Shown here in pieces: positions 1 to 31,200 of a DNA stretch of 63,686 nucleotides. Below the pieces are notes generated by a model. It was not told the origin of the DNA. It saw only the letters and a program-made list of their open reading frames with translations, and searched no databases. The translations under genes were made by a program, and so were the position numbers. Source of the stretch: Perkinsus chesapeaki ATCC PRA-425 (taxonomy: Eukaryota; Protista; Perkinsozoa); assembly GCA_013115145.1 (NCBI GenBank), contig JAAPAO010000143.1, positions 1 through 63,686 of the forward strand, given 5' to 3'. Within the stretch, counting starts at the first letter, position 1. Every line of letters starts with the position of its first letter.

Positions 1-1763
1 TGTCGTTTGTAGAGAGTGACCCGTCGAGGTGTTTGGTGCTGGCGAGCCCCCTCGTTGGTGCTGGTGAGCCCTCCACGCACTGTTGGGCACAACTTCGTCC
101 CGTAACATCGGCGCGTTCTTTTAATTTTTTCGGTGTCACGTCTGCCATTTTCTGCAGAAGTTCTGAAGAGCAGCTTAGCAACATTACCCTTTCACCCTGG
201 TTTAAACCAAATAAGCAATAATAATATTATTGTACCCTACCGGGCTGGGGTAAAAGTAGTCCTGCTCGCTAGCCTACAGTTCTTATTAGGTCGGCAACCT
301 TATTATTTTTGCCATTATGACCGTTACACCAAATGACACTCTATCAAATATAGAGGATGTCACTAAGACGCCAGATGTGAGCTTTACTGCCGCGACTAGT
401 GCCACAAGTGTCATTAACAAAGACGAGGAGCGGTATGATGATGACGTCGGATCAGAATCGGCTTCGGTTCAAAATTTAGTAATATAAAATTCTCTTATAG
501 TATCTTTTATAGTGCGCACCAGGTAACCTTTGTTAACAGTACTAGTTCAATTGATGATAAAACAACAGCCACAACACCATCAAATGCAAGGAGGAAGCCT
601 TTACCGTTGGCACCTATTTTTGATGACTCGGGATCATTCACACTAGGGGAAATGCTAGAGCCAGATACCAAGGTGATAGGGGTGGTGACACGCTGCCTGG
701 GGATGATATGACGTATTTGCTTGGTTATCGAACATAGTAATATTCGGGACCTCGCGGAGATTTTATCGAATCTGGGTGGAGGGTGGGTATTGACTGGATG
801 AATGGTTCATCTGCTATTTTATAGGGAATATGTTGTATTTTCGCAGTACATATAGATCCTCAGTCGGGCACTAAACGAAGTAGTAGGGATAGGAACTGAT
901 TGCACTTCCTTTAGGCTGGCGGCAGACATCCTCTCCGTGTTGGAGATAGGTTCTTCGTATGTGGTGAAGGAAGTATCTTTGCTCCTCAAGGTGGTAGTGT
1001 ATTAGCTGATACGATAGAAGAATGGCCATTATCTGATGGTCTGGCTCAGAAGGGTGTTGATTGGAGTGTCTGTGAATGGGAGGTAATAACAATATTAAAT
1101 CACACTTAATGACACTTATTTCTGTAATGATGCTGGCTTCGTTCGCCATGGCCTTTCGACATGTGTCGGTAAAGGTAGCACAAACCTTGCATAGTATTAT
1201 TGACAATAATAATGACAGCTCCACTAACGATGCTTACAGATATTCTTATCCCAAACTTCACCGCTTACTGCTTGGTAGCCATCATCCTCTAAGAGGCATA
1301 AACCGCTCGTTGGGGAAATTTGTGACGCAAATTTTTATGGTTGGGCTTGGTCGACTGATACCTCATGTACGATGGTGCACCAGTTCGTCAGGGATTCTCC
1401 GGAGTTATTATTTCATACCCTATATGCTGAACTCTAACGCTTGTTCGATTAATAATGTGTGTAATGAGTCTGATGAAATGGGGAATCCTATAAACCCTGG
1501 TCTGTTAGGCTCTGTGGTAGTGATTCGATAAGATTGAGTGGTACTGGCTTTAGGTAGCGGCTGTGTCCGATAATCCCCCAATATCACCAGCACAACAATT
1601 GGCATCTAGCCAGCAGTTAACAGATAGATTTGTGCCATCTTGGATGCAAATGCAGGTAATGACAGGTTTCGGAGGCGACACTTGATAGAAGAGCCAGCGG
1701 TTAATGGGGCACGTTTTGGTCGAGAATATATTACGCTTGGACGTGAAACGAGGAGCCAGATTT
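1..1763 (+). CDS. Unidentified multi-exon protein-coding region (5' truncated); exon structure not resolved
   Basis: Several open segments bounded by GT..AG (about 290-478, 520-672, 915-1080, 1550-1763) and a hydrophobic stretch near 1110-1160; no recognisable family motif. Confidence 0.3.
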
Positions 1764-1969
1764 AATATTTTATCGATCTTATTTGATATCGAATTCAATT
1801 TCGGTCAAAGTTGAATGGAGAAAATATATCTAAAAATAAAACTGCGGAAGATTCATACAGGGTGTGAGTGGAGCAGCAATGTGATGCTAACCTTCTCGTT
1901 TTCTTATATTCCGCATCCCCGTTTTAAATATAAGGAAGTATTCAGTTAAGTAGGATTCAATCTCTCTCA

Positions 1970-4811
1970 GTGTTGGTGTGCCTGCCTTGCCAACCAATAG
2001 GGCCTTTAGCCCTGAATCAAGGCATGTGGAATTTTGCGATCAGATTTCTTCGAATTTTCTCTCGGGCGGTGCTTTCTCGACTATTAATAGACTGACTGTT
2101 ACCCCGGCCAGAACGCCCCATGGTTGTTGATTTGTTTCCTTTAGACTGTCCACCCTCGTCGAGTTGTTGCTGCTCTTGAGAGGAGTAACCCTTCGATGGT
2201 GACTGATAAATATATAGAGCAATTGCTGTTACACGAGTTCGAGGCTGATGCCAGTATCAAGTTCATGGCGGTGGCGTTCGAGCCATACGTGTTTGAGAAT
2301 CGGGCAAGATACTGCAAGCTGGGTGATAGGAGTAAAGCAGAGCAATCAAAGGAACAGGAGGTGGCAGAGGCGGAGTTTTATCAATGGATTCCACCACAAG
2401 GACCGGATTATACACTGGGGGAGCTGTAATATGGTGTGGTGGTAGAGCGCAGGGTATTTATGGGTAAGAGCCTGGTTCGATCCCCGGTGAATGTATTCTT
2501 CGTTGGGCATTATGGATACATTTGCACCGTTATAGGGATTACTAGTGGATTTGACATGTTGGCTAAAATCGTGGAATACAGTTGCAAACGAGGTTATTTG
2601 CGAAGTTGTACTAGGATTTAACTTAATAACTAATTATTGCTATTATCATCACCAACGGTATTAAAGCTTCTTACGTTCTTCCGTTTGTACGGCATCACTT
2701 CCACCTATGCGATTGGGTAGTCTGAGGGGCTTATTTTTATTCCTCTATCATCATTGAGTGTATTTGGGATACTGGGGTTGTTGTTACTGTGAATAGTGTA
2801 GTATACTCATTCGCGAGTGGACTTTTTGCTCTACAGGGAAAGCATTGCATCCGCTCAATGCTTATATCGACCAGCACTGTTCGGTCGTATGTCAGTTACG
2901 TTGAAGCCAAACGTCAGGGCCGAGGGGTGTGGAACAGTTACAGCGACGAAGGGGATTTTCTGAGCTATGCTGTGCCATTTTATTGGAGAAATGCCTTTGC
3001 AGGTGTGGTGACTTTGGATACTCAATTGAAGGTAATAATGACAGGAATAATAGCGAAGAGTGATTGGGTAGGCGGCAGAGATGAAGTCAAGTGAAAGGAG
3101 CGCTAGGATATCCAGGAAGACAGACGATGATGGATGCACAAATAGTCAAATACATTCGACACATCTTACGGCAGCTCAAGCAGACCAGCTGGCAGACTCG
3201 CTGGCCCAGTCGGCTATTAATTTAGCGGCGCATTTAGCGGAGCGAAGCAAACCGTTGGATAGGGAAACGTTGAAGGAGCTTGGTCGGGTGTATTTGGGGA
3301 GAGATCGTAGAGTGTTTGGGATGGGAATCGCCTTTGAGCCGCAGGCATATGATAATAAGGCAGCTTGGATGACCTATGCTTCACATTGTGGAAAGGAGGT
3401 AATTAAGTGGCGCGTGAAGATGGGGATTTGAGTGTAGGTATCAATTAATGGGCGAGTGACTAAAGAAGTTGTAATTGAGGAGTTTGATGGAGTTAAGGGA
3501 TCATTTTATCAAACTAATGAATGGTGATATGGGAGTAGAGGAGGGGTGGATAAGGTGCATATTACTATTCACCAGAACCCTCTTGTCTGTCGGTATTATT
3601 GGTAAAATTAGTCAGTAATATATATAATAATACACAATCTGTGGAGCGTGTCAACGCTGGGATTGGAACAATCGCAGTAGCGCTTTGATTACTTTTGAAA
3701 ATGCTGCCGAAGCGGGAGAAATTAATGTAGTTGATGAGGGAGAGATATCACAAAGTCGATCGTGGTTTTAAATAGTAAACTTGAGAACAGTGTTGATTGG
3801 TATCTTCAAGGTAGATCTAGTTATGGGGGCTCTCTTCGACGGTTTCTCGAACCATAGTCACTCTATCTTGTTTAATATAATCGAGTGTGATGCTGTATTA
3901 TATGGAAATAGGGGATTGGTGAGCGTTTGTCTTTAAGGTACAGATCATCTATACTATCATCTCGATCGCTTTGGACGGCGCCGTATTATAATGCTCATGC
4001 CGGCAAGACCTTCCTTAAGACTTTTGCGGTGCCGTTTAGGCTTCAACCGAGTGCTACTACAGCTAATACCGAGTCGGCAACAACAGGGGGAGCGGCGGGA
4101 AGGTAGTAGGGAGGGGGTATGGTGGTGTGATATGGGGGAATTACGGTATGAGATGATACTGACAATTGAATGTTAGCTTGACAATAGAAGTAAAAATTAT
4201 ATTACTATCAGCTAGCTTATAGTGTATTAGTCATCATCACATTAGGAGTAGTATATGATGGTAATGCGTCATTACTGGGACCTTAAATTAGAGCCCTGGT
4301 AATGATCATAAACACCACTACTATTGATGTGGACACCGCATACTTGATCACACTTATTTCTGTGGCAGGAGGCTGCGGAGTAGCTGCTTCTGAATTCTGG
4401 CGAAATTGTGAGCTTGTTTCCTTCAGTAGGATAGTCTAAAGCATGAAATGATACTGATAGGTGTGCATAAGTTCTATACAAATAATTAATTTTCTGCTCA
4501 TTATATAGTGTTTACCTGTACTTGAGGTGACCTAAGGTTGCAGCATCACTGCCGAGTCTGACTAGCTTAGCAGTACTAGTGTTACTGTCACTGTACCTTC
4601 CGACTTGGTGTCCCTTCCTTTAGTTTATCTGGTGTGGTTCGTCTGGACGTTGAGTATTCTGATGCGTTACATTCATTTTTTTATTACGAATCAGCAACGG
4701 GAGGGGCGGCAGCTGAGGAGCAAAGTGGCACCATTTGCTCAACCTGCGGCCATGATACTAGGTGGGTTCGGTCTGCTTCGCTCCGCTAAGGAAAATGGCA
4801 TTTTTGGTTAG
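1970..4811 (+). CDS. Tandem Cache-domain (dCache-like) single-pass membrane sensor protein, multi-exon; limits approximate
   Basis: Two sets of Cache-type motifs. Set 1: IKFMAVAFEPYVF (about 2260-2300) and VWNSYSDEGDFLSYAVPFYWRNAFAGVVTLD (about 2925-3020). Set 2: VFGMGIAFEPQAY (about 3312-3350), VDWY (about 3790) and WTAPYYNAHAGKTFLKTFAVPF (about 3972-4037). Then one hydrophobic helix LVSLPLVYLVWFVWTLSILM followed by basic residues (4605-4720). Confidence 0.65.
2471..2495 (+). other. tRNA 3'-end fragment (T-arm plus acceptor strand TGAATGT-A) at the 5' end of a probable 72-nt intron (2464-2535)
   Basis: CCTGG-TTCGATC-CCCGG-TGAATGT-A has tRNA 3'-end geometry and follows a GTAAG donor; no D-arm or anticodon arm upstream. 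Confidence 0.6.
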
Positions 4812-7800
4812 TATTGCCTACTACCAGCATCCTGTATCGGCGACTAGGATATGCATTAGATGCCACTCGCTGGGGCTTTATAGTGGAGCGGAAAAACTGC
4901 ATTATCGATATGTGGATGACGCGAGGTCAGATGCTGCCGGGTCATCGATTTCGGAGGGCAGTGAAGAGTCGGTGGAAGGGGGGCCTGAGGGGGATGAAGA
5001 AGGCGCTTTGGAGTTCGTAGAGGCCTGTGATAAATATAGGCTATGTGTTAGTCGATATAGGAAAGAAGGGGAGGAGCTGGAGATGGGAAGATGCGCGCAG
5101 TTCAGGCATGTCGCTACGGGAAAATTATTGTGTGTAGATGTCTCTGTGAGTAACGGAGAGCACGGTATATACCAACATTGTCTGGAGGCGACGGATTGCT
5201 ATACGCAGGGCAGCCCGGGGACATGGTTCAGAGTGCTGCAAGCTGAGCAGAGCGATTGGGACGAGCTGGCCCGGCATAAGATGGCGAAGGAGGCGGCGCA
5301 GACGGCACGTTTGACGCCGAAACGGTTCGAACATTCGGTGTCTCAGGATGATGATAATGAAGGCGGCTTTAATGATAGTGAGGAGAATCATAGGCTTTGT
5401 AATTGGGCGATTGTACGGAAGCAAATGACGGACTCGGGGCTGCTGAAGGCTGGTAAGGATTATGCCAAGAATTCTGGGGGACGGTCGGCGGCGGTGAGGG
5501 TTGGGGGGAACAGGAACGAGAGAGCAGGAGCGGTGGTGATAGAATCGATGTCCTGGGGGGCGCGATGTGGTCCGATATTTGCTAGGAAGATAAGGAGTTA
5601 CCGGGAGACTGATACTAAAAGTGATCCGGGCAGGATTTGGGAAAGAGCTGTTAAGGAGGCGGTTTGGAGGGTCGATAATTTCACTGATGATTCTGAGGTT
5701 TTGGTGCAGTTTAGGAATTTACTGCAACCGTGGGAGGAGGCAAGGGTAGGCGATGGGAGGGACATCTTGGTTCGGTCCGTAATCGTATACTTCCATACTT
5801 GATAAAAAGCGATTATCCAATTGGATAAAACTTCTGAGTTGGAGCAGCTCCCAATTTTGTAAAATATTATTATATCATTTTACACCTCTCTACGTTATAC
5901 AGTATTAACATTGGTAAAATGGTTCTGTATTATTTGTGTTATAGCTTTCTATTATTATATACTCGTCTCCTCTTTTTCATTGTAGATGTATATATTTTTC
6001 AGGCCCCTATAGGGCTATTGGTGAGAGCGTCGGTGGATATGGGTGCATTGAGTGCTATACTGAAGCATCAGGGAAGCTCTAGTAAAGGGAAGTAAGCTGG
6101 GTGGTGTTAGCGGGCTAACAGCAATAGTGGCTTTCTGTGATTCCTTCCGTCTCGGAAGAAGGGTATTGAAGCATGAAAATTTGGTATGATGTATTATTAT
6201 TTTTATAAAGCCTTTCCAGATGTCTGCCATTCTGAAGTGGTTCTATCATTATTACCTTTGGCAGTTTGATAATTGTTATAACTGTTATATACGTATACGT
6301 TTGGGTATCAGTGTGCAGCAACAACGCTGCTCTACCACAGCCCAGCTCCTCCTGTAGTCTTCCAAGTTGAATCTCATAGTACAAGATGATATAGTGCATC
6401 ACTTCCTTCTTCTTCTCCGCAGGCTCCTGGCATGCCTTATCCCCTCGCTGCATTCTGACACTGTTAACGCCATATCGATCAAGCTATGGCAAGTCTTGCC
6501 GGGCTCGATTGATGCCGTGGCGGCGGTGTGTGCTCGGAGATGCTTCAATATATCACAGGCCCAGGTAGGTATCTTATCGCACTGTGAAGATTTTGAAGAT
6601 ATCTCAGATGGAAAGGCTAGTAGAGGTCACATTCAACACTGAGGAGAACTCGCTCTTGATGAAGGGGGCCACGGCGATCAGTAACGTGTGCCGTAGATCG
6701 AGACGAGCCCAAAGGATGGCTGTGGATAATATCTGCAGCAATCATCTATTCTTGGATAAGCTCAGAAGTGGCATTGAAGGTGTGGAGGGGCTTTGCTGAA
6801 TTGCTGTAGAAGCTAAAGATAAATATTGTTGAAAATACTGAGCGTTGTGATGTGAAATTGTAAAAACGAGTATCAGAATATGAACGGCGAAGATGAAATC
6901 TCAATCGATCAACTTCGAACAGAATTTTTGGAATTGAAGAGAATAATACTTGTACAAAACGGTGATAGTTTGGGGTTAGTGCCGCGGCGGTTCATATTGA
7001 CAGTCAATAATCGACTGGCGATCCTCATGGACAGGAGGCAGAGCTTGTTAGTCGAATTAATAGAGAGATCTTGCGATCTTGCTCTCACTTGCATTTCCTC
7101 AGGAGAACTAGGAGCGACATCGCTATTGCAAGCCCAAGTGTTAGTAGGAGATCTCGCGGAGCACAATCCAGAAACGTCGACGCATCTGATGGGTGTATTG
7201 GATTTGGAACTGTCATCGCTTCTACAGGAGTTACATAGGGCCATGCAGAGCTGCTTTTTGAGCCGGGCGGAGGCCGCTGGGGCGTGTGTGGCGGTGAGCG
7301 GGATTCCCAGGATGATTTTAACGCTTTTCGTGGATGTCTGTGAGGTGGGGTGGAGTCGGAAGGAATTGGCATCGACGACGTATGTGGTCGATAAGGATCG
7401 AGCGATGGAGCAGTATGCTAGTGGGACGATAGGATTAACATGGAAGAGGAAAGGAGTGGATAGAACGGTTGAAAATATGCAGATTGATACCACTGACGGA
7501 CGGAAAAGGCTATTAGATCTGTTGTTGGGATTCGTACATAGGGCGGTTTATCAGCCAGAGGTCAACGACGCTCTTTATGCAGCTTTGGAGCTGATTCATG
7601 CTGTCACTGTTAATGATATGTATAATGATGCTGGTGACAGGCTGGCTACTGTAAGGGAGCTTATTCATGTTGCCAGTACTGAGCAGTTTATTACTGGAAG
7701 TGAAGAAGTGGTTCAGAGGAGGGTGGTGAGTGGTAGAAGGTGCAAAGTTGAGGCGCTGAATGTGCTGCATTCGATTAAGGATCTGCAGCTTCACGAGAGA

Positions 7801-10800
7801 GTGCTGATGGTTGTGGCTGGCCAGGGCGCGGAATCGATTGGAGATGCGTTGATGGAGCCAGGGTTGAATTTGATAGAAAAAAGCTTCAAAGCGCTCCATA
7901 GGACGACCGACCCGAGCCTCGAGGAGAGCCTGGCGAGTATGTTGTTGAGACTGCATGTCACTCATACGGAGCTGAAGAGGTCACTGCTGAGGGTGCACTA
8001 TGTGGAGACGGGGCAAATGGATTTGCTGAGTGATGCTCAAAAATGGACTATTGAATTGGCGAGGATCTTGGACGAACCAGAGATAGATGTATTGGCAGCG
8101 GCGAGGGCGTCGGGGCAGTTGAGAGCTAGTTTGGTACCGGATGGACAGTATGGACTGACGAAGTAAGGGAGGAGGGGGCATGAACTTGGCAAGCTATAGC
8201 TATTATTAATAATGATTCTAATAGTCATTTTTATTATTAATAATGATTCCGATATTCATCCGCATTCATACTTTGTGCTCAAATTAACTCCTCTCATTAA
8301 TCCCTATAAAATCATATTATTGGATATATTTTGCATAATTTATCTGAATGTCTACAGGTCTACCGATCTCTACGTTGCCCTTGGAGTCCACGAGCGTCTG
8401 CTTCAACTGCTGAAGGTCCCATACCTGGGAATAGCGGTCTGGGAGAACTGTTATTCGACACTTACAACTATGGCACATGCTACCAGTTATCGTACTGTCA
8501 TCAGAAGGTTGGCCAGAGAGTTCCCGTTGTATCTCAAGCACGCTGAGGAGGACATAAGAGGAGCCAATAGGCTTTGTATTGAACTGCTGTGTGCTAATAA
8601 GGAGTTGGCGGCAGAATGGTAGGCGATGGGGAAATGCAGGAAAATTGCAGGAAAAAATCAGGTACGAGCAATATGTAAGCTCGTCGTTGAGGATACTGTC
8701 TAAGCGGCCGATGGCGGTGGAGATACAGGCATTGAGGACGCTATTGGAATGCCTGGATGCATCCTTGGTTGATAGCGGCATTCGATTGACGATCGCTAGA
8801 AGCCTTTGCGAGATGCCTAATGTTCTTGGGGATCTCTATGGGGCTATATCTAGAGGTAAAGTTGGCGGAAGTATGGTATAATTAATTTGTTGTCGGTAGC
8901 ATTGATTTTTGCTTGTGGCTATGTATGTGCGGAGGAAAGGAAATTTGGCGGAACTCCGGTTATTCTGCGCGAACGACAGTCGGCGAGGAAGTTGTAGAAG
9001 TAGATAAATGTAGCAGTGATGTTTATTACGAACAACTATAGTATCGAACAAATAGATAATGTAATAGGATTTCAGTAAAATATGTAATTAGAAATATATA
9101 CCAACGGTAGTACGCTATACCGACGGGTGAAACAAGATGGAAAAGTGTAGACGCTCTTAGACTTGGATCGAACAGCTCGTTCCTTTTCTATTGAATCTTC
9201 TATACAGATGAAGAAAAACTGCCAATATTCGTCCGCACTGTAATTTTGTAGGATATTTTTGATGTTAGAATGATGTCAGGTAGCCCAGAAGCGATGCACA
9301 GTCTGGTTAACCAACTGAACACTGGAAATCCTCGCTACTATGTGGAGCTGCTTGACTTGTTGAGAGTGTGTGCTACTGATGATGCCGAGGCAGTTGTGGT
9401 GACTGATTCTAATGATGTTACACAAACAACTGTAGAGACTAGGAGGAAGGATGGAAGGGTAAGTGTCAGAACGTTATAGATTAAAGGAGATGATTTCGAT
9501 TAGTAATTACTGTTATATATTGAATGTTTTCCTTCTTTTTTTTCACGGGCAGCAGACAGAAGCCAGTATAGGAGTATAGCTGTGGCGGGCTCAGTCCCTC
9601 GTAAAAGGCGGGGCGAAAGGCCCTATGAAGTGTAGAGGTGAAATTATGCCCCATAAAGACAATTATGCCCATATGAAATAGTAGGAAACAGTTTTACTAA
9701 ATACATTATATATAAGTTTGCCTTTGGAGTGCCAGTGTGTGGTGAGCTGAGATAGATGTACACAACAGTACAGGCCTCTGGTGGTGAATATTACAGTACA
9801 TGGGGTCCCGCGAGAAATGTGCTCCCTTGTGAGCTTAGCAGCTTACTTGTTAACTATATTATGTTTGCTAAGCTCTTTGCTACTTGCTGTGACATTCTTT
9901 ATCGGATTTGATCTTCTCAGAATAATCTCGTTAACATCTTGCCTTACACATTTCCTTCAGGCCTCGGCGCTGCTAGGGAGGGTTCTGCCAGTGGACAATA
10001 TGGTTAAACTGTTGCTGTCATGTCACAGAGTTGGAGTGAAGGCGGCTTTATTGGACTTTATAAGGTAACCTTCATCCTTGGGGACATCGATTATAAAATA
10101 CGGCGGCTATGTTACCTATAATGGTGTATTTAGGAGATAGTTTATTATGATAAAACAGTATGAAAGTAGATTATTAAATGATAAAATTGAATTAATAGCA
10201 CTCGAATGCGTTAGTAATAATACTACTTAAGCATGCAAAGGAAAGTAGTTGCACCCAGACAGGTAAGTACTCATGTCACTGTCGGGCAGTCTGGGAAACA
10301 TGTCAGGCAGGATGGAAGCAAGTATCCACTGCGTGTTCGACGCCGAACTCCGCACTGGTTGGCCACTATCTGCTTGTACAAGAAAAGTCGTCACTGTTAC
10401 AAAGCTACGGAGCTTAAGCGCCATCGGTTAGCACTCATGCGCCTAACACGTCACCTCCGTGTATTCATTAATCATAGTTGTATTAATATTATATAATGAT
10501 GTTGGAAATAAAGTATACTGATAGGATTCTTCTCTTTGAGTTTATTGTTTCCCATTCAGATTGGTCCACACAGCCGAGGCTGTCCTGGCCCTCCCCGCTG
10601 AGGTGATTGCCGAAATAATGTCGGATTTCACCGCTACCATCAACGACTGTCTCGAGGCGTATTGTAAGCAAAAGTCGGTATACGCCAGCGGTGGGGCAGC
10701 TAAGGAAGGATCTGGTGAGTATGGGGAGGATCGAGAGGATGATTTCGCAGAATCATTAAGAGGATATCTTAATGGCACAAAGATTCTCACGGCAAATACT

Positions 10801-13800
10801 TCGTCTTTTCATTGCTCGGAAAGATTCTTCTCGCACCCGAAAGAAAAGATTCTTTTCGTAACAGCGCCCCTCACCTCTCTGTACGGTGTTTGCCTTAACA
10901 AATCTAGTAAATCCCAACTTTAGTAATTTTTTTCTTGACTTGTCCCTTTTCAGATGCTCAGCAAGGTCTCGATGATGGTCGAGCCTCCACGGTTCTATCA
11001 TCATGCGTTTGGCTTGGCAAGCACAAGGAGTTAGCTACCCCGCGGGCTTATGTGTTTAAATGTATCATACCATTTTTAACGTGTCTTTATCACACTGGAG
11101 GAGTACTGGATGCCACTGCTAAGGGAAAGTGAGTTGGTGGGAGAATTTATCTTCTTAAGTCTCATAAAGATTCTAGTTCGACTAGGAACTATATTACTAA
11201 TTATGGTTATTTACATTACAGTGCGCAATAAAACTTCTACTGTATCAAGAGCGTTTTCCTGCGATTGTTTTTATAGAGTATTTCGTAAGTTCACTAAAAA
11301 AATTTCTGAAAAATTTTACTGAAATATCTTATCTAGGTATGTGCACGTTCTTGTCAACTTTGTAAAATTGGGAAAAATGGGGAAAAAGGGAAAAATGGGA
11401 AAAATTGGGGAAATTTCGGGAAAATTTCGCAATTTTTCCAACTCCTAGCTTTATCTTATGAGGAGCTTTTTTGCTGGGCTAACAATATTCCGGTTCTTAG
11501 GATGGTACCTGTGTTGCGAGCTTTGGTGGTGCAGAAGGCCTCTGCCGAGTTGACAGCTCGATTGTGTGAGTGTGCCGAATTGAGCAAAGATGACAGTGGT
11601 GGAATAACTGCGTTGTCGGCATGCCTGTTACATATCACTGATCCTTGTCATGGATCTATGGTTAATCAAAATACGGTAAGCGTTATGATGACGCAGATCG
11701 ATTCTATTGCGTTCCGTTGGGCAAGTTCAGTAGAAATAAATTTAGTATCTTCCGTGTCTTGTAGCTTCTTGAAATATTCATCGGCATTGTAAAAGTAATT
11801 AACCTCTAACGCTTCTCTATGCTATCCTACATTTCTCATTGGTTCTGGGATGGGACGGAGCACCACCATCGTACGAGTGCTTCTGCCCCTGACTAGAACG
11901 TCCCAACGCCGCCCACTATTATTGAGCAACAACTGAGCACGTGCCGCCCTTTGTTTACAATTTCATTTTGGTATTGATGGAGGCGCACCCCCGTTGAGGG
12001 GCAATGGTTGCTGGAGCACATCATACTGTATGCTGTTCTCTAATAGGCCACTTGAGCGTTCGGTGAATATGAATAATATTTTTTCAATAGACTGTTTCAT
12101 TACAGTGCGACATTCCCGCCGGCGTGTGTCGCACTACTATGAAGATATCCTGTCATCGCCTTAGGTCATCCGTTGTGACCAGTCTCTACTGTCAAGTACA
12201 ATCACGCAACTTGAGAGGTATCGAAGACTGTGTACGAGGCCACGGTTGTTGAGGAAGCTGGGCAACACTGAAAGGGAGATCTGTGCGCAGTCGGATGAGC
12301 GCGCGCATCGACAAGTAGGAGAGCTGGTCGCGGGTTCGATCCCTGGCAGCGGCATTTTTAGAGAATTACGGAGTCCATAACGTGGCAGTCGGAGAGTGAG
12401 CAACTTAATAATCTCACCAATCTGTTCCGAGACGAAGGTGGCCATTATGAGTGGGATTGTTTGAACAAGATTATTAGAGTATTGGTTAGAACATCTGCTG
12501 CTGCAAGGTGAGGTCGTGGGTTCGATCCCCGGGTAGTGTATTTTAATATACGATAGAAACAGTAGAGAGCTCCTTACAGTCAAGAGTTCTTTATGTATAG
12601 TTCGCAAGGGCTCCGTTGCACTTCCTTTATGTCTTATATTTCATCTGTCCACTACATACCGAAGAGCTAAGCTCGTGCGAACAGTACGAAACTCTCCTTC
12701 ATAAGGGCTTTGCTTTGTTTTTACCTTTGGACGTTTTTTCACCCTCTACACTGCGCGTCGGATTCTTGTGAACCACTTTGAAGATTAAGCTAACTCGGGG
12801 ACGCACGTGTCTGCACTGGGAGTCATCTCGCCTCGCAGGAATGTGTCTCGCCCCTGAGGGTTGAAAACTATTCTTAACATAATGGAACTTCATTGGCAAA
12901 TATGTTCCTAGAGTAAAAGGACTCCAAACGCGTTCCTTCTGGGACCATTCATCATTCCCCTATGACTCTCTGTAAATTGTTTACCTTCACGTCCGTCCGG
13001 GAAATACATTATTATAGGTCGGCTCGGTCAACCGTTATCGATCCTGTTGACGAGGATGCTGCCCATGACGACGAGGAGCTTGTGAACTGTCAGTGGATCA
13101 AATCGAATAAGACCAAGTTCACCCGGCTCTATTTAAAAGCTCTGTTGCCTCTTGTCAAAGTAAAGACGATAGCAATAAGGCTGCCATGAATTTTCGGTTC
13201 AGGCTCGCCGGAACGATTTCGTCAGGCGAACTGAAGTTTGCTGGATGCTCGCTCATCTGCTTGGCAGCCACTCTAGGGCGATATTATTGGGCGCGCTGGA
13301 ATTGGCCGTGTTGTGTGTTGAAGGGGGGTACAAGAGAGCACAGGTGAGCGAATTCGGGGAGGGGCTGGGAATGGAAGGAGGGGAAATATGTGTACTTAGT
13401 TTTATTAGATTTTTGGGATGAAAAATTGAGAGGTTGGTATTAGCAATTTGTTAGATGCGTTACAGTGGTTGGTAGTGGAAGCCCTCGTGAAGGTCAGCCG
13501 GGTGTAGTTGTATTTCGCTGTTCACTATTCGCTTTATTCGACCTGTTGATTGGAATCCGAAAATAATGTATTTGTGAAGCAAACTGTGCCACTTTGCATA
13601 ACCAAGCATCTCCGCTTCATGTTTGCCAAATATGGTGGATTTTGTGCAGAGCCTGTATTTGCCGTTTTCAGTCGCAACTTTGGCAGCAACCGGCAATCAC
13701 AAAGCTTCGCTTCCTCCGGAACATAAGAGATGTTTTGAAGCTGCAGCCGCAGAGTTCAACCGATCCACGGAGTTTAATAATCGACATTGGTGCTGCCAGT

Positions 13801-16800
13801 CGGCAATATGTGCCGGAGAGGGACCAATGGAACTTGGTCCTCTCGAGTCTAAGGCAAGTGGGGGTGTGTATTGAGGAACTGCGGCAGTTGGTTGACATAT
13901 TTAACAATGTTAAAACGACTAGTGATTAAGGAAGTCAACTTAATATACTTGATCACTATTTGTTTGGTCTGCTATGAAAATGTTATCGGTAGGGGTCATG
14001 GGGGTTCTGGGGTGGGAAATAGGCTTGGATCTTCTCCAAATCTTCTGCCTGGATGTGCATGTGGTGAACTATATAAGAGCTACGCGCCTTGCGAGCCATG
14101 CGATGATGGATTGGTCTGGTGCCTCGCCTTTTTGTCGCGATGGGTGGTGCCTATAGAGGGTATCTATGACAGCTTATTAAGATTGGAAATCGACCTATCG
14201 TTCCAGTCGAAATATTTCTCAGCAAAATTTCCCGTGAAGTTGGGAATATTTAATTGAAGCTGAAACGGTTTTCCTGCGTTTGGGAACGGTCCCGATATTC
14301 CTCCCACCCCTCGCATATGTTGTATTTCAGGTTCATTAAAGAGCTCTGCGAAGGTCACTACGCTCACTGGCAGAATGGTGTTAGAATGCAAGCGTCTGTG
14401 GGCGGCGGCAATAACAGTGGTAACTCCTCCGCATGCAACCTTACGGTTGGTGTATGTGATGCTTTGAGAGATAGCGCCTGGCTTATACCTATGCTTAACA
14501 GGTAAGTAGTGAGGAGGGGGCTTACTGACTATGAGAAATGAAAACCCGAAACCCGAAAACCCGGTTGCACGCTCCTTCATGTAGTGCATTTAGCAATTTG
14601 GGAGGCGATAGTAGAAGCTCCGGTCTAGGCGACAAAGTTGACACGAGTATTGGGTTCGCAATAGTAGTTATCAAATTAGCTATTGCGGAGGGCAAGTCTG
14701 CGTGGATTTTGTTTTGGGTAGGTAGTTTCCTATGTTATTTCAGGTATGATGACTTTGTGAAGCGAGATGTTAGATTATTGGCTAAGATGTTATCTGTTAC
14801 CGTATCATTATTTTGCACTATAACTGAGCTGTGTCAAGGGCCATGTGAAGGGAATCAAAGTGCGGCTGCTAGGAAAACTAAACTGCTTTCCTCGGTTAAT
14901 CATATATGGTAAGTTGGATTAATCAACTTATGAAAATTCGAGAAAATTTCAGAAATTTCTGGGAGGTTTTGTGGCTTTGAACTGGAGCAGCATGCAGGAT
15001 ATGCGAAAGGGGGAAATTTCGGTATTTTTTGGAGTCCCACGGACTTGATTTTCCTAGGAAGAATTGAAATGACAAGCCAGTGACGCCTGGGTATTCACAG
15101 GACTGAGCTTTAGTGTTATGATTGATTATTAGGTTGGCTATTAATAAGTCCAGCGAGCAGGAAGAGTCGCCAGCACCACCAGGGGGAGTGAATCGGTGGT
15201 TATTGAAGAGGAGTGCTACTAGTTTATTAACTATACCGGAGCATGACGATCTTACCACACCGTTATTGAATCCGGATAAGGTGGATGATGGACCCGTTCT
15301 CAGGGATGGGACGCATGTCAGGGATAAAGCTGCTGTTGTTAATATGTTACAGGTAAGCCGGTTTTTGTGGCTTACTGTTATTATTTTGAATCTACTAGTA
15401 TTTTAGGAAGGCGGCATTTGGAGTATTATTGATCATTCTTCTGTGGTGTTTTGAACGGAAGATTTCTGGCAGTGTTCCCAATTTTATTTTTATATTTAAT
15501 TTTCTCACCGTTTTGTATTTCAACATTTCGCTATATTGCTGAAGACTAAATTAAGACTAATAATACTGCTTGTCTGAGAATATGTTTACGAATTACTCAT
15601 AGTAAGCCCACATCGCAAGCCGGCACTCTACAGAAATTAGGAAATTTGCACAACTGTATTTTACATTGCTTGATTTCGATGATTTCGCTGATTCCCATTA
15701 TCTTTCTTCTGCCGCCTCTTGCGTCGATCACGTCTCTCTCTTCAGATGGTTATTCTTGATACTCTATCATCTTTACTAGAAGGTGGTCATGGTAGTGATA
15801 CTGTACGACTTAACGCTGATACCATGGCTATATCATTGGATACTAATATGTTGACTAAGTTGTTGGAAGGAGCCATTAGGAAGGGACAGGCGTCATTGGC
15901 AGCGAGGTGAGATTGGCGAATAATACCTCACTGTTCTGCATTATTTCTTTATTTATTTCCATTCATCTTTCTCTATCAATGTTATTTTTGAATCTTTCGA
16001 TGATAATTTTTTTCATCAAATGTATCGTATAGACTTTCACTTTGCTGTTTTTTTATTTATTTTGTCCACTAGGTTTCGTCTGCCATGTTTCTGCCTGTTT
16101 AATATTACTGCTCGGCTTTGCTGAGTCTTACGTGGTGATTTTACTTATATTTTTTTCGCAGTTTTCTTTGTGATGGTCAAAAGAGTACTACTGTTATATA
16201 TCAGATACATGATACTAATAGACTCAATTACGAGGCGCGTGACTATGAAGAGCTCGGCTGCTAGTAAATGGGCATCTTATAATAATACTACGCCCATGCT
16301 GAAGGCAGTTCGAGAGAGCCTGCAGGTGAGGAAGGGTTACTGCTGCTCGTGAAGCTGTCGTTGGCGTATATTATACGAGTAGTTGCATCGCTTCTTAATA
16401 GTGAAACGGTTGATCGATTTGTTGTTAAGCCCTTGTAGTATATACCATCCAATGTTCGTGTCTCAGACGACCGGAGAGGTCTCAGGGTGGTCGATTCGCA
16501 TATAGCAAATTTAACAAACAGTAGCTTTGAGAATGTTTGTTCATAATTCCAAATGTTGGAGTTTTGTGGCGCGTGAGAATCCTAGGCTGTGCTCACTGAG
16601 ATCGTGATATTGAATGAGCGCTCATTGTCAGGATCGCATCGGTTCGGTTGAAATAGTCAACTGTCGTGATCAACTAGAGCATATTTATTTCATAGTGCCT
16701 GACTCGGTGCTCAGAAGGTAACCTCGAAAATATCTTTGCTTTTTGACTCGTCTTCCCAGAGCCCAAAGTGATGAATTCGAAGCGTTAAAGGAGAGAGTGA

Positions 16801-18721
16801 TGCATGATGTCCCTCGAGACAATCCGGTGCAGAAGTGTCAAGTGAGGAGCTCCGGAGGAGGCCTATCTCACTGGCTGCTGCTGCTGGTTTTGATACAGGG
16901 TCGCTTCTCATCTACTTTCGACAATGTTCGTATACCGTCCAATTTCGGCATCGCACGCCGGCGCTCTACGGCGAGAGATAACTAAAATTGGGCGACGTAC
17001 ATAACAAATTCTTCGCATACACTGTACATCATATTGTTTTTGCTACTACTTACCCTGCTTGTGATACTGCTCACTGTTACCTCTCCTACTTTGCAATTCG
17101 TTATCTTTTCTCCCTTGTAGAGTACTAAGCAACTTTATATGAGCAGCCCTTCGTTGGCTAAGTATGAGCTTTTAATGACCAAATGTCACTTCCAAACTAG
17201 AATATTTTATTTGATCTCTCCGTGTTACCTTATTTCTCTCCATCTCAGTCCTTCCTGGACATGATAACCGACTCGCTGGTATGGGAGCTGACGGCCTGTG
17301 ACTTTATGAAAAAGCGTCGTATAGTGCTACTTCAGCCTCAACTGTTGGACGCCACATTCCTCTTGTCAATACTACTCAATGCATTGGCTATTATTATTAA
17401 CACTACAGACAGGTAAGGTCGTTTGGAGGCCTGTGGTGACGTTAATAAAGCTGAGGGGCGATCCCGTTATAGCGTTTCGTAGAGGGGATTCCCTGATTCT
17501 GTGGGCTGAAGCGCGAGAGAATTCGAACCGAAGGACACACGCGGTGGCATTTTTAAGAACTTCATGTGCAATATTGTCCGTCTTGGTGGATAATGATACT
17601 GAACACGTTGAAGCCGATATTATTGAGCTAATAAGTGTCATGTTATGCTCTTCTGCATCTTAGTACTGGTTGTCACTCCAACCTCTGACGTATCTTTCCT
17701 ATCATCATCAGGTTCCATCCACTTTGGGCGTCCCTATTATGGTTGCTCGGTCTAGTGCATGCTGTCCTGTCGATGGCGAGGTTTATATCGTGTACGGTAT
17801 CAAAGTTGCCTATGAACTTATTAAGACTTGAGCCGGACTTGGCCCATAAATTGGACGAAGAGCAGGTAAGTGTAGCGGAGCGAAGCGTTTCATGTTTTAC
17901 ATTTTCAGGATTTGTCGCTGCTTGTGAAGGCGGGCGTTCCTCTGCTATGGTTCATTCCATGGTATCATTTGACGTATCTTTTGATGTCGATAAGTGCATG
18001 GTCGTTTGCCGGAGAGCATGTTTACTTTTTTCATCTTTTTGACATAATTCTTCAATCCTCTTTATTGAAGGTGACTCTCCGTTCTATCCAGAGCCAAGGC
18101 CTCTCCCTCGCCTCGACAGGGATGCTCTGGCTCCTCATAATGTACTCTTTTGCCATGGTGGGCCACAGGCATTTTCGCGGTGATTTCCCAGAAGGAGAAT
18201 GCCGTGACGTGACGTCTTGTATCGCTTTTGTTATGAACTTCGGCTTGAGGGCTGGAGGAGGCCTCGGGGACTATTTGAAAGGTGGCGAGGAGGGCCACAG
18301 TGAAGGGTGGGGTAGAATGGTTTTTGATACGATATATTTTATTTTGAGTACTGTGGTTATGGCTAATATAGTGAGTGGTATTATTATCGATGCTTTTGGT
18401 GAATCTCGCGATAAGAGGAATGAAGTGCTACTGGACCAGAAGAACAACTGTTTTGTTTGCTCGCTCGCGGCAGCTAAGTTCGATAGAGCGGATCGATTGA
18501 CAGGATTTAGGCATCACTACAAAAGGATGCATAATATGTGGGCGTATGTTTATTTTGTGGCGTATCTTAAGTTGAAGGACCCCACAGAGCTCACCGGTAC
18601 GGAGGACTATGTCAAGGCAGCAGTCGAGCGACATTCAATTGACTGGTTGCCGGTTTTAAGAGCATCTATGGGAGCTGGGGAGAGGAAGGAGCTTAGAGAA
18701 GATATTGGGGAGAGTTCGTGA
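4795..18721 (+). CDS. ITPR: Inositol 1,4,5-trisphosphate receptor / ryanodine-receptor family Ca2+ release channel, multi-exon
   Basis: N-terminal beta-trefoil/MIR-like MGRCAQFRHVATGKLLCV...GSPGTWFRV (ORF 4762-5802); long helical middle exons; last exon 17912-18721 has pore motif GLRAGGGLGD, S6 helix NIVSGIIIDAFGESRD and the C2H2 linker CFVCSL...HYKRMHNMWAYVYF...KDPTELTGTEDYV, all diagnostic of IP3R/RyR. Confidence 0.92.
12315..12361 (+). other. 47-nt intron of the IP3R gene made mostly of a tRNA 3' end (sense)
   Basis: GTAGGAGAGCT-GGTC-GCGGG-TTCGATC-CCTGG-CAGCGGC-A-TTTTT-AG. Removal joins open frames ...DERAHRQ|RITESITW...; retention frameshifts. Confidence 0.85.
12508..12556 (+). other. 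49-nt intron of the IP3R gene made mostly of a tRNA 3' end (sense)
   Basis: GTGA-GGTC-GTGGG-TTCGATC-CCCGG-GTAGTGT-A-TTTT-AATATACGATAG. Removal joins ...VRTSAAAR|NSRELLTVK in frame. Confidence 0.85.
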
Positions 18722-18893: not shown

Positions 18894-20189
18894 ATGTCAT
18901 CATCTTCCTCCTCCTCCGCCTATGGCGATCGTATGGTTAAAGGTGTGTTGAAGTTGAAGGGAGCGGATGGTATAGCTAAACCGGTAGTAGGGCAGCAGCG
19001 GCAGCAGCAGGCTGGGATCTGGCATCTTTGAAGCTGGCGTTAGAAATATAGAGAATAAGGGCTGGGCGAGTCGGTAGAGGCAAGTGGTTTCTCTCGTAGT
19101 AATTGCGTCGCATTAAATATCTCTTTAATACCCGCAAGGAGAGCGCTCCTATATCTTTCTGAATCATTCAGACTGAATGTTCTTCTTAGTAGCACTGGGG
19201 GCCTTCCGCCGGATCGCCCCTCGGTGGGGCTTATTTTTCAAGGAGTGGTCGGTAGGGACTTACTTAATAGGTTACCTCTAAAAAGAAGAGGAAGCATCAT
19301 CATAGATCGAAGGAGACTGCAGCGGATAAGCCGGAGCCGACACGACAATCTGATGAAGAGGAATCGGATCGGTAGGAGCTTGGCCGTTTTATTTGCCGAA
19401 GTTTGTCGCCACTGGTGAAGGGGTCGAAGTAACCTCGTGACAGTTGGGCAGGGGATGAAAAATTTAGTGCGGTTTATTCGGTTTCTACAAGTGCTAGACT
19501 TTACCAGTTGTACAATAAGCCCTTAAATTCAACATTGTATTGCGCGTATTCTTTAGAGTGCGAAGCTGTTCAGTACGCGCAGTTCTCTGGTGCATTTACA
19601 TATTCATGGGTAATAGATTAATCGCTCCCTGTCGGAGTGTTCTGGGGGCTCTTGACTGGACGGGAGAAGTGCTCAAGTGGGGCGCCAGTAATATTATTGA
19701 TCGTATCTGCGCCACACATTCTACGTATTAATATCTTACTAAAATTGATTATCAGTACCTCCCAGATCATTTATAAATGCCTGTGAATCTTCCCGTCTTG
19801 CTGGCTCCAGAAATGTATCAACGACGTCGGACGTTGTAATGTGTTGTAGAGCAATCGAAACTACATTCGGGCAAGATTGATAAATGCCAGCGTGTTGACC
19901 AAAAATGATAATAAACGTTTGGGAAGGTTTGGGGGGACTTGTAGCTGTTGTTAGGGCGCCAGAACCCAAGTTGACTAGGACGCCTGCTGAGTTGGCATTT
20001 CAACGGTTACAGGAGGAGCGGAAAGGTGAGTGATATGAGTGAGAGCGAGGGTGAGGAGATTTGTGGTTAGCTGAGAGAATAGCGAAGCAAATTGCCAAGA
20101 CACATAGAGAGAAGATGGATGAACTACACGACAAGTTGGATAAAATGAGCGAGCATTTCGAGGTGCCTAAGATCGCTGGTACACATTAG
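18894..20189 (+). CDS. FAM32A: FAM32A / DUF1754 family protein, multi-exon
   Basis: N-terminal MVKGVLKLKG and C-terminal RTPAELAFQRLQEERK|AERIAKQIAKTHREKMDELHDKLDKMSEHFEVPKI match the FAM32A pattern (KGPLKLKG...RTPAQAAF...KTHKQRVEDFNRHLDTLTEHYDIPKV). Confidence 0.85.
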
Positions 20190-20852
20190 GAGGTGGTTGC
20201 GGCGGCAGTGGGAAGGGTGTTGAGTTGTACGTTGTTAATGGGGAGGTATGTAGGCAACTATATTGGCCATCAGGCTTGTCCTGTCTTTGTGTCAGTCTTG
20301 GGAAAGTCCTGTCTTGTATCCATGGAGGAGTCCTCATTTTCACACTAATCGCAGGCGCTATAGGAGGTTCTCGTGGATCTCTGAAAGCACAGACGTTGGT
20401 TGAATTGCCTTCCACGTGCGTTCCCCTCATCGCTGGGCGTGTCTATCGCCTGTGGAAGGTTTTAGTCTTTCTTTTATCACGTTGCTGTTGCATATGTATA
20501 AGTATAGCGAGTGAGATGAGGTTACGGGAAGCATGGACTACTGGGTTGTTTTTCTTTGTATTTTTAAATAACAGTTGTCGGTTCTTCGAAGTACCTGTCT
20601 TTGTATTGCTGATGATGGTGATATAATGTCATTGATATTCACATTGTTGTTGTTGAGAAGGTGGAGGAGGTAGTGGTATAACCTTTCCCTTCCTACCACT
20701 GCTGCTGTGAGCTCTTGTTACTTGAATGGTGCTTGATGTTGTTTGAACTCCGGGAAGATGGAATATGACTCTAAATCAATACAGCTGTCAACATGACAGC
20801 ACATGTTAAAGTTAGATATTAAATTGATCAGTCTGCCGTGATAGGTTGTGCA

Positions 20853-28200: not shown

Positions 28201-31200
28201 GAGCTTTCGTGGATCGCCTCGGCTTGCCACTGGAGCTCGATACCGATGGTATCTGGTGCATGCTGCCGAAAAGCTTTCCCGAGAACTTCCAGCTGAAATT
28301 GAAGTCCGGTAAAGTGATATCTATGCCTTATCCTTGTTCGGTGCTCAACGTTAGAGTCCACGAGAAGTAGGGCATCCTAGTTGGTAGCGGATGCATATAA
28401 GACGGCTGGTGGCTTTAGGTATACTAATCATCAATACCAAGACCTCGAGGCTGATGGAACCTATGCGAAATCTTCACAGAATTCTATCTTTTTTGAAATT
28501 GATGGACCGTATAAGTGCATGGTGAGTGCTGCCATTGTGCCGTATTGGGTTTAAAATGCTGAAACTACCCCACGAATGTGTTGGATTGTCTTTGCCGTAT
28601 TTTCCCTTCTATCTGGTGTATGCGAGACCCTATACGTTGTTAAATTGTTCATCATATACTCTGTAGGCTCCATTTATATCGTATGTCTTTGGACGATCTT
28701 CCGATCCTACTTCGGTTTCGGACGCCAGTGCTTGTCAGTTACTGCCGGCCTCGACTGAAGAGGATCGATTATTGAAGAAACGTTACGCAGTGTTTAACGA
28801 AGACGGCAGCCTAGCAGAGCTGAAGGGATTCGAGATAAAGCGGCGCGGTGAATTAAAGCTGATACAGGTATAGCTAGCAGCTAGAGGTGTCAGAAAAAAT
28901 GGTTGCGGTGCGTAGGTATTCCAGGAGGAACTTTTCCCGAAGTGCTTGGAGGGCAATAATATCGAAGAAGCATACTCTAGAGTTGGAGAAGTAGCGAATA
29001 GGTGGTTGGAGGTAAGAAGTGGTTCTCCATCGTCAAAGTGAATGCCTAAGAGTATAAGACAGTTTGGCCGAGTGGTCCAAGGCGGTGGCTTTAGGCGCCA
29101 TTCCGAAAGGGCGCGGGTTCGAACCCCGCAGCTGTCACTTATAAATCAGGTTCTGGATACAAAAGGAGCTTCCTTGACTGACGAGGAAGTTATCCACCTC
29201 ATATCTGAGAAGAAGACCATGTCGAAGAGTGTTGAGGATTCCGGTACGCTAAAAAGTACCAGTATAACCACAGCCACCCGAATGGCTGAGTTCCTCGGTA
29301 AGTAGGATTAGAGTTTACCTTTATCGTTTTCGTTATTAGGTTCATCTATCCTTCGAGAGAAAGGCATATCTTGTCATCTTATTATAGCACGTAAACCACT
29401 AGGAGCTACACCAACTGAGAGAGCTATTCCTGTTAATATATTTAGTGCAGAAGAAAAGGTTAAAACTACGTAAGTCATAATAGTTTCTTGAGCCTTCGAC
29501 CTTATGGAGATACCTTTACTTTTAGCAAGTCCCTTTATATCTATACCTTTACTTTTAACAAGTCCCTTTATATCTATACCTTTACTTTTAACAAGTCCCT
29601 TTNNNNNNNNNNNNNNNNNNNNNNNNNNNNNNNNNNNNNNNNNNNNNNNNNNNNNNNNNNNNNNNNNNNNNNNNNNNNNNNNNNNNNNNNNNNNNNNNNN
29701 NNACTTTTAACAAGTCCCTTTATATCTATACCTTTACTTTTAACAAGTCCCTTTATATCTATACCTTTACTTTTAGCAAGTCCTTTTATATCTATACCTT
29801 CACGCCCACCGCCTGTTTTTCTGATATGATACCTGGTGTTTGTTCCCGGTAGCATCTCTGGTATCTTCGTTAGATACCTTCGTAAATGGATGGGAGATCC
29901 TTCTATTCGTAACTTTGATATTCGTGAGATAATAGATTGGCAATATTACAGGACAAGGCTCGGCGCAGCTATACAGAAGATTATCAGCATCCCTGGTAGG
30001 GCAGTACTCCCGATAATCCCTAGTGTGTTTGCTCCAGCTATGAATCAGCACGTTAAGAATCCTTGCCCATCCGTAGAGCTGCCACAATGGGCTAAGAAGC
30101 GTGTAAGGGAAAGAGAAGATACGTTCAAGTAGGCCTACTACTTTGGGGATGAAGGTTTATTGCATCTACTTCGTTGGGTCCGCTGTATTGGCTATTATTG
30201 GCAGTGTATTTATTACTATTAACATACCTGTAATTAAGAAAAATAGATGTTGATAAGAATATATAGAAATATTATAATAAATAAAAGCAACTAGGTCTCT
30301 TTGACAGTGCCAGACTTTACTGTTGTTAGGCAGAAGAAGATAACTGATATGTTCGCAAGAATGGCTTCCAAGCCTGCAGCTAAAAGCTCCAGAAAGAAGG
30401 TTGCAATTCAGGCAGCTGCCTCATCATCATCTAGTTCATCGTCGAGCTCTAGTGTCAATGCCTTGCCTGACAGTGCCACTGCTATGGATATTGAAGAGGT
30501 AGCTTGGTCGACGACAAGTGTGACGACTGTTAGTAGTGACTTATGGTATCAGTCGGTTTGCACTACACAGTTTTACTAAGGAGTTGCCAGAGCATATGTG
30601 CTGGATACGTATACAAAAGCGCATTTGTAATTTTTATAGTGCATAATACGGTATCCATCCATGTTACTAATAAGCCGCACACGGTGATGAATACATTCCG
30701 CATTGGGACCCAATATACCCACTTCTGCCATTCTTGGGGTCCTATATTGTCTCGTGTGCCGTTTATAGAAGTCTTAGTCAGATTTCCGTATCCTCATCGT
30801 GCATAGCTCTGAAACTACAATGCTAGGTAATAGCACCACCGCCAGCAGCAGCAGCAGCTGAGGAAGACTTCCCGGCTGAGCCCTCCTCGCCGATCGTCGA
30901 CGTTGAGGACTTGCCTCTTGAAGGAGCAGCTGCATTACTGAGGCCTGCAAGGGATGAACCTGTCAATTGGAAGAAGGTAACGAAATACCTACTGGGGACG
31001 TTAATTGGTATTTGTTCAGAAACAAGCCCAGAACCTTAGGGAGAGACAGCATGGCACTAGGCAACATAAAGAGGCACTGAAGGAGAGGATGGCTAAGGCA
31101 CAGCAGAGGTAGGTTATAAATGTTGATAGTTCCGCCTGTATAAGAATGTGCTCAAAGCTCGCTTGAAAGACTATGTTTTTACGTGATGCTTGATAGGCTA

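Follow-up and report, generated by a model that had tools for sequence, protein, structure and literature searches.

A large gene of Perkinsus chesapeaki probably joins a tandem of PDC modules to an IP3R-type Ca2+-release channel

We analyzed a stretch of 63,686 nucleotides from the oyster and clam parasite Perkinsus chesapeaki (ATCC PRA-425, assembly GCA_013115145.1, contig JAAPAO010000143.1, forward strand), called here the window. We consider it likely that positions 317 to 18721 of its plus strand form one large gene for an IP3R-type intracellular Ca2+-release channel with an N-terminal tandem of PDC (Cache-like) modules. The inferred gene starts at ATG 317, ends at the stop codon 18719-18721 and comprises about 37 exons and about 2750 codons. 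In order, it would encode the tandem PDC, a Cys/His motif, a divergent beta-trefoil-like N-terminus of the channel and a long helical region, followed by RIH_assoc, a six-transmembrane-type pore and a C-terminal CxxC/HxxxH motif. The case is built on comparative sequence analysis and the splicing was deduced from conservation; the mRNA is very likely spliced as modelled.

The public model of this locus is KAF4670951.1 (P0004; "hypothetical protein FOL47_001749 [Perkinsus chesapeaki]"), with a length of 2063 aa. We placed it exactly on 317-13926, as 27 exons separated by 26 GT-AG introns, and observed that all 26 intron positions were common to Perkinsus olseni. Exon blocks that are conserved and colinear with P. 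olseni reach 18706. Every neighbouring pair of these blocks could be joined via high-scoring, phase-compatible splice sites located exactly where conservation ends. The exon chain built from the conserved blocks and splice scores is open through to the stop at 18719-18721.

A preliminary description of this DNA had suggested that a Cache-domain sensor runs directly into an IP3R-type channel and that the two may be fused. We confirmed that there is no intergenic space between the two parts and that the features listed there are present (frame-3 TAG 4809-4811, ATG 4795, GT 4762, AG 4789-4790, GT 4926 and AG 4966). The fusion itself held, in the sense of one reading unit; the anatomy proposed for it did not. 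The last exon of the PDC part (4624-4761, plus strand) codes in frame 2 (...LSGVVRLDVEYSDALHSFFYYESATGGAAAEEQSGTICSTCGHDT), with 89% amino-acid identity to the P. olseni protein P0001. When the exon was compared with the P. olseni orthologs L001 and L002, 26 of 33 nucleotide differences (binomial P about 1e-7) and 29 of 37 differences, respectively, fell on frame-2 third positions. Next comes the junction intron (4762-4811, plus strand, phase 2). It is 50 nt long, reads GTGGGT...GGTTAG and shifts frame 2 to frame 1. Its donor at 4762 had been recognized correctly, but not its acceptor, since the intron ends at 4811 and not at 4790.

P. olseni has an intron of the same phase at this codon (53 nt in L001, 2323-2375; 52 nt in L002, 12410-12461). 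Comparison of the junction intron between the species revealed no codon periodicity, and the indels were not multiples of 3. Its length is within the 39-50 nt of the gene's short introns, and the reported Perkinsus introns range from 39 bp up and are mostly shorter than 100 bp (PMC3101222). A frame-1 third-position bias starts at 4812, with 21 of 32 differences from P. olseni in 4812-4910. Further, P0004, P0001 and a second P. olseni model, P0016, all read GVVRLDVEY.DALHSFFYYESATGG...CSTCGHDT before the junction and S(I/L)AYYQHPVSATR.C.RC after it. The junction-spanning peptide predicted by the fused model is CGHDTSIAYYQHPVSATR.

The first exon of the IP3R-type body (4812-5745, plus strand) reads in frame 1 as SIAYYQHPVSATRICIRCH..., followed by the beta-trefoil-like motifs CDKYRLC, GRCAQFRHVATGKLL and GTWFRVL. 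The Cys/His motif, C-x2-C-x10-H-x7-C-x2-C-H, extends over 4736-4866 of the plus strand (C564, C567, H578, C586 and C589 of P0004) and is split by the junction intron into 4736-4747 and 4828-4866. Its columns were invariant in alignment A1, including P0003, a protein of 32% identity encoded on a metagenome contig of 20,335 bp in ENA (assembly ERZ25069412) on which genes had been called as plain open reading frames (ORFs). P0003 is an uninterrupted ORF that passes from the last PDC strand (GVVSVDVSY..LHSFFY) through the Cys/His motif into the trefoil-like QLRHIRSNRLL. Downstream on the same strand come an ORF of 694 aa and one of 1221 aa, which carries RIH_assoc and Ion_trans. The Cys/His motif is a candidate zinc knuckle, which would bind zinc and link the second PDC module to the trefoil. 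Matches of the trefoil-like region to known families were weak and non-significant (Ins145_P3_rec E 0.005 and MIR E 0.14 in P0003; RyR2 N-terminal domain E 0.46 with a profile from alignment A1).

An exhaustive search with window 4795-5760 returned only 3 relatives among 1.84 billion representatives. The best of them, P0001 (P. olseni, 1619 aa, partial), aligned at residues 470-777 and thus had about 470 residues upstream. These first ~470 residues correspond to the PDC exons of the window, and P0001 is colinear with window 924-11126. P0002 was considered as a possible transcript and rejected, as it is another partial P. olseni genome model. The first IP3R exon had no match in a word search, which owing to its length limits covered candidates of 177-563 aa, and no relatives turned up when metagenomes were scanned with alignment A1 and P0003.

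In summary, these results support the view that the PDC part and the IP3R part belong to one reading unit, joined by an ordinary intron, because the public models of two species agree, the position and phase of the intron are conserved, and the periodicity switches frame exactly at the intron. The Cys/His motif that straddles the intron and the uninterrupted ORF of the distant relative argue for the same reading.

The N-terminal extension has about 570 residues and consists of a conserved leader, two tandem PDC modules and the short Cys/His knuckle. The upstream part had been described as Cache-like, and this was borne out by two matches to Pfam PF22673 (MCP-like_PDC_1) above the cut-off of 27 bits. 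Module 1 (2214-3031, plus strand; exons 2145-2425 and 2896-3031; P0004 ~218-333) scored 34.1 bits over profile positions 1-109 of 113. Module 2 (3285-4761, plus strand; exons 3072-3398, 3438-3523, 3938-4102 and 4624-4761; P0004 ~405-547) scored 40.8 bits over P0004 ~405-507, and exon 4624-4761 encodes its last strand, GVVRLDVEY..LHSFFY. The score for the whole of P0004 was 63.4 bits, and in a single-exon Pfam scan the upstream PDC matches were only weak. The phmmer search against PDB detected the periplasmic double-PDC sensor 3lic_A (E=2.8e-6) and, more weakly, sensor kinases and one chemoreceptor. Language-model look-alikes of the PDC region were PF22673/dCache_1 clusters and a GPR158 ectodomain cluster. 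Both modules are 77-90% conserved between the two Perkinsus species, and a word search in which the PDC tandem was the query by itself gave no match outside Perkinsus. An apparent Cache exon at 4299-4436 (IDVDTAYL) was rejected, being intronic in both public models. The leader before the modules (915-1655, P0004 105-194; LRVGDRFFVCGEGSIFAPQGGSVLADTIEEWPL...WSVCEWE...FVPSWMQMQ) shows ~85% identity to its P. olseni counterpart and matched no Pfam family.

We found neither a signal peptide nor a transmembrane segment, the marks of an extracytoplasmic location, in the first ~900 residues. The maximal Kyte-Doolittle 19-residue mean was 0.87 in residues 1-480 of P0001 and 1.47 in residues 1-900 of P0004. 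The N-terminus is hydrophilic and begins with the same start Met in P. chesapeaki and P. olseni. With no signal peptide, and with no membrane crossing between them and the pore, the PDC modules would lie in the same compartment as the large N-terminal part of the channel. This large assembly is cytosolic in all known IP3Rs and RyRs, and the modules therefore apparently face the cytosol. The topology suggested in the preliminary description, with Cache outside or luminal, one membrane helix and a cytosolic IP3R body, is not supported by these observations. As regards resemblance to alpha2-delta or CACHD1, Pfam detected no VWA domain in P0004 and there was no C-terminal transmembrane helix after the Cache part.

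The assignment of the downstream part to an IP3R-type channel was confirmed. The pore exon (17909-18718, plus strand, stop 18719-18721) encodes S5, the filter GGGLGD, S6 and CFVC...HHYKRMHNMW, and shares 93% amino-acid identity with P. olseni. Pfam Ion_trans matched 17876-18718 (E=4.7e-13), and phmmer against PDB matched the pore exon to ITPR2 (E=8e-43), ITPR3 (2e-41), ITPR1 (4e-40) and RyRs (about 1e-34). The alignment displays the GGGLGD filter and the CxxC/H..H motif of IP3R/RyR pores. Upstream of it are the RIH_assoc exons (14331-14908, plus strand; 14331-14501 and 14744-14908), which are conserved with P. olseni. Here PF08454, characteristic of the superfamily, matched with complementary halves of its profile (E=2.2e-4 for 14254-14502; E=2.6e-6 for 14535-14909). 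Pfam found nothing else on the body exons. For the RIH repeats that also mark the superfamily (PF01365) there was no match at E<=1 in P0004 (2063 aa), and residues 880-2040 of P0004 had no sequence match in PDB. The absence of an RIH match may reflect divergence. We consider the label "IP3R-type channel" justified for the predicted product of this gene, with a very divergent helical body.

The truncation of the public model P0004 goes back to a GC-AG intron (13854-14330, plus strand, 477 nt, AAG/GCAAGT...TATTTCAG/G) that the annotation missed, so that its reading ended within the intron at TAA 13927-13929. P. olseni has a GT-AG intron of 45 nt at the same codon, and its model P0016 continues across it as ...NLLLSSLR/FIKELCEGHYADWQ; 13854-14330 is the best phase-compatible splice pair of the window there. 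GC-AG introns may be systematically missed in this P. chesapeaki annotation. P0016 in turn is cut short at an intron with a 3.3-kb insertion, and the remainder of the locus appears in the annotation as individual genes with RIH_assoc and with Ion_trans. A user of public databases would not see the architecture, since the P. chesapeaki model ends at the missed intron and at least 3 models divide up the P. olseni locus. All public models of the gene are labelled hypothetical and are truncated or split before the pore, and no database entry shows PDC together with the channel.

The insertion of ~3.3 kb (L002 18904-22196, P. olseni JABANP010000024.1) lies in the intron after the first RIH_assoc exon, which has 242 nt in the window. 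It holds a 502-aa ORF on the minus strand without a Pfam match, splits the annotation into three or more models and may be a mobile element.

The fused gene has to be weighed against two other readings of the junction. The preliminary description had a type-I membrane sensor, with a transmembrane helix at 4605-4680 and basic stop-transfer residues, whose reading would pass into the IP3R frame through two very short introns, one of 29 nt (4762-4790) and one of 41 nt (4926-4966). Frame 3 is open over 4566-4808 and hydrophobic (19-residue Kyte-Doolittle mean of 2.1 for 4605-4680), the arithmetic of the two introns works, and the donor at 4762 is genuine. Conservation refutes this model: the periodicity of the exon fits frame 2, and in both P. 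olseni orthologs frame 3 contains stop codons over this exon and lacks the hydrophobic stretch. The acceptor at 4966 scores -3.4, and both public models as well as P0003 read the region differently. The supposed helix is a frame-3 artefact over the frame-2 exon and the end of its upstream intron, and the single 50-nt intron makes the frame shift on its own. We give this model practically no credence. Single-intron fusions out of frame 3, such as 4811-4883 (73 nt), were also rejected, since the true frame is 2 and their donors score poorly.

According to the other reading there are two separate genes, which the predictors fused. The PDC protein would end after 4761, at the frame-2 stop 4787-4789, and an IP3R transcript with a trans-spliced leader, added at AG 4790 or 4811, would start at ATG 4795. 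In a weaker form, a fused isoform and a PDC-less trans-spliced isoform would both exist. Spliced-leader trans-splicing is used by Perkinsus (PMC3101222). Several further observations weigh against the single gene at this point: an in-frame ATG lies in the junction intron of the window and also, upstream of the same exon, in that of a third Perkinsus-like contig, L003; the splice sites of the junction intron are the lowest-scoring in the gene (donor 4.1, acceptor 1.9); a search of RNA sequencing runs listed none with this stretch, and two small same-species runs gave no contigs; and the full-length models that back the fusion are gene predictions. L003 is a genomic contig of 4872 nt (Logan SRR12548988) from a third Perkinsus-like organism with ~70% nucleotide identity to P. 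olseni, and bears the same channel gene. As it begins within the junction intron, it was set aside as evidence on the upstream exon. Against two genes stands the comparison with P. olseni. The ATG at 4795-4797 (plus strand), taken in the preliminary description for the IP3R start, is inside the junction intron and is present in neither P. olseni intron; in that species the protein past the junction has no Met for ~170 residues, by which point the conserved trefoil motifs have been passed. The segment 4795-4811 aligns with frame-breaking indels. For all these reasons trans-splicing at AG 4790 ahead of this ATG is disfavoured. The tails obtained by reading through the end of the PDC exon show no conservation. 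The position and phase of the intron are conserved. Moreover, two separate proteins make little sense when the Cys/His motif is split by the intron and yet contiguous in the ORF of P0003. We regard two separate genes as improbable, but in view of the low splice-site scores and the ATG shared with L003 a PDC-less trans-spliced isoform may exist beside the fused one.

A short block inside the junction intron is kept in the three Perkinsus-type sequences while the remaining intron diverges. It reads CTGCTTCGCTCCGC in the window (4773-4786) and in P. olseni (L001 2338-2351), and GCATCGCTCCGC in L003 (~62-75). A branch site or a regulatory element is conceivable, as is chance.

If the single gene is accepted, the role of its PDC tandem has to be considered. 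IP3Rs and RyRs are gated through the N-terminal trefoil/ARM ring: their trefoils form an apical ring, the rearrangement of which passes to the pore. A cytosolic small molecule might bind one or both PDC pockets, the ligand-bound PDC would shift the adjoining trefoil/ARM ring, and this shift would tune or trigger Ca2+ release, together with IP3 and Ca2+ or instead of IP3. We put forward such ligand-driven coupling of a cytosolic metabolite to Ca2+ release tentatively, as a possibility somewhat short of probable. A little less likely, in our view, is the wider proposal that the tandem is a working cytosolic metabolite sensor, by which perkinsids and a wider, as yet unsampled alveolate lineage gate Ca2+ release with a non-IP3 or additional ligand.

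The main alternative is that the gene is fused as described but its PDC tandem does not sense small molecules and is degenerate, structural, regulatory or used for protein docking (tetramer assembly, tethering or partner binding) in the absence of a ligand, and we take this to be a real possibility, though not a probable one. Several alpha2-delta Cache modules are mainly structural. The Perkinsus modules are very divergent, as the word search with no match outside Perkinsus and the 3 relatives of the adjoining exon illustrate. In module 2 the R-x-W-Y signature, which we take to be that of amino-acid-binding dCache_1AA domains, is replaced by N-E-W-Y, as judged by eye. On the other side, both modules score above the Pfam cut-off and are well conserved between the species, PDC domains in general are overwhelmingly ligand binders, and the PDC module directly adjoins the gating ring. 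Some observations weigh against the proposed sensor-channel as such. Cache/PDC domains are normally extracytoplasmic, and a cytosolic ligand sensor would be atypical. We identified no ligand-pocket motif in the PDC modules. AlphaFold2 models of the PDC part and of the trefoil part had pLDDT of 32-33 (PDC: 31.9, from a 2-sequence alignment), so both the PDC fold and the trefoil are supported by sequence only. Pfam detected no RIH (RYDR_ITPR), MIR or Ins145_P3_rec in P0004.

We compared the predicted protein with known systems. It resembles metazoan ITPR1-3, and more distantly RyRs, in RIH_assoc, the GGGxGD filter, S6 and the C-terminal CxxC...H..H NMW motif. It also resembles ITPR1-3 in its length of about 2750 residues and apparently in the beta-trefoil-like N-terminal motif G..aQFRHvaTGklL. 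It differs from ITPR1-3 by the extra ~570-residue N-terminus with two PDC modules and the Cys/His knuckle; its body has no significant RIH, MIR or Ins145_P3_rec, and the IP3-binding residues are not alignable. With the bacterial and archaeal double-PDC (dCache) sensors of histidine kinases and chemoreceptors (PDB 3lic, 3li8) it shares homology to the membrane-distal PDC and the signature FG.g.aFeP ... W..PY.d ... GVv.lDv. Unlike them, the Perkinsus modules have no flanking transmembrane helices and are apparently not extracytoplasmic, both are of the "first-PDC" type instead of distal plus proximal, and their output would be an ion channel of the same chain and not a kinase or MCP domain.

Cache-type modules are tied to a Ca2+ channel also in alpha2-delta subunits and CACHD1, and the dCache pocket of alpha2-delta binds amino acids and gabapentinoids. 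Those proteins, however, are subunits of plasma-membrane channels; they are separate chains on the outside of the cell, contain VWA and are type-I or GPI-anchored, whereas the Perkinsus protein lacks VWA, transmembrane helix and signal peptide in this part and would carry its module covalently within an intracellular release channel. The orphan class C GPCRs GPR158 and GPR179 likewise have a eukaryotic Cache/PDC domain fused directly to a membrane signalling protein, but their Cache is extracellular and their output is a GPCR/RGS complex. The ciliate IP3R/RyR-like channels (Paramecium CRC families) are, like the Perkinsus channel, divergent alveolate members of the superfamily, some of them without a recognisable IP3-binding domain. 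To our knowledge, no PDC/Cache N-terminal extension has been reported for them.

Between P. chesapeaki (317-18721) and P. olseni (L002 10001-25373) the intron positions of the gene are identical and the intron lengths very different. Most P. olseni introns have 45-75 nt. About two thirds of the P. chesapeaki introns have 195-521 nt, many of them 470-520, and together with the 39-50 nt class they form a bimodal distribution. We considered whether the long introns are a repeat family and rejected this, as there were no cross-matches among them. Synteny with P. olseni persists downstream, with a FAM32A-like gene (18900-20200) and then a gene for the DNA polymerase epsilon catalytic subunit (20300 onward). 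An assembly gap (run of N) is located near 29600 of the window.

In our literature search no paper connected Cache domains to IP3R or RyR and none described Perkinsus IP3Rs, and we know of no IP3R/RyR member with a dedicated extra Cache/PDC ligand-binding domain. A tandem cytosolic PDC fused to an IP3R-type channel is apparently an architecture not described previously. Cache domains are regarded as extracellular sensors, and a covalent cytosolic PDC-IP3R fusion would be a new route coupling a chemical signal to Ca2+ release. Should the tandem be a working metabolite sensor, the Perkinsus protein would be the first ion channel gated by a Cache domain, and its tandem the first Cache sensor of a eukaryote with a clearly cytosolic position. 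The lineage adjoins apicomplexans and dinoflagellates, in which the Ca2+-release channels and their ligands are a long-standing molecular gap. As Perkinsus is a major pathogen of shellfish, a parasite-specific channel module would be a natural pharmacological handle.

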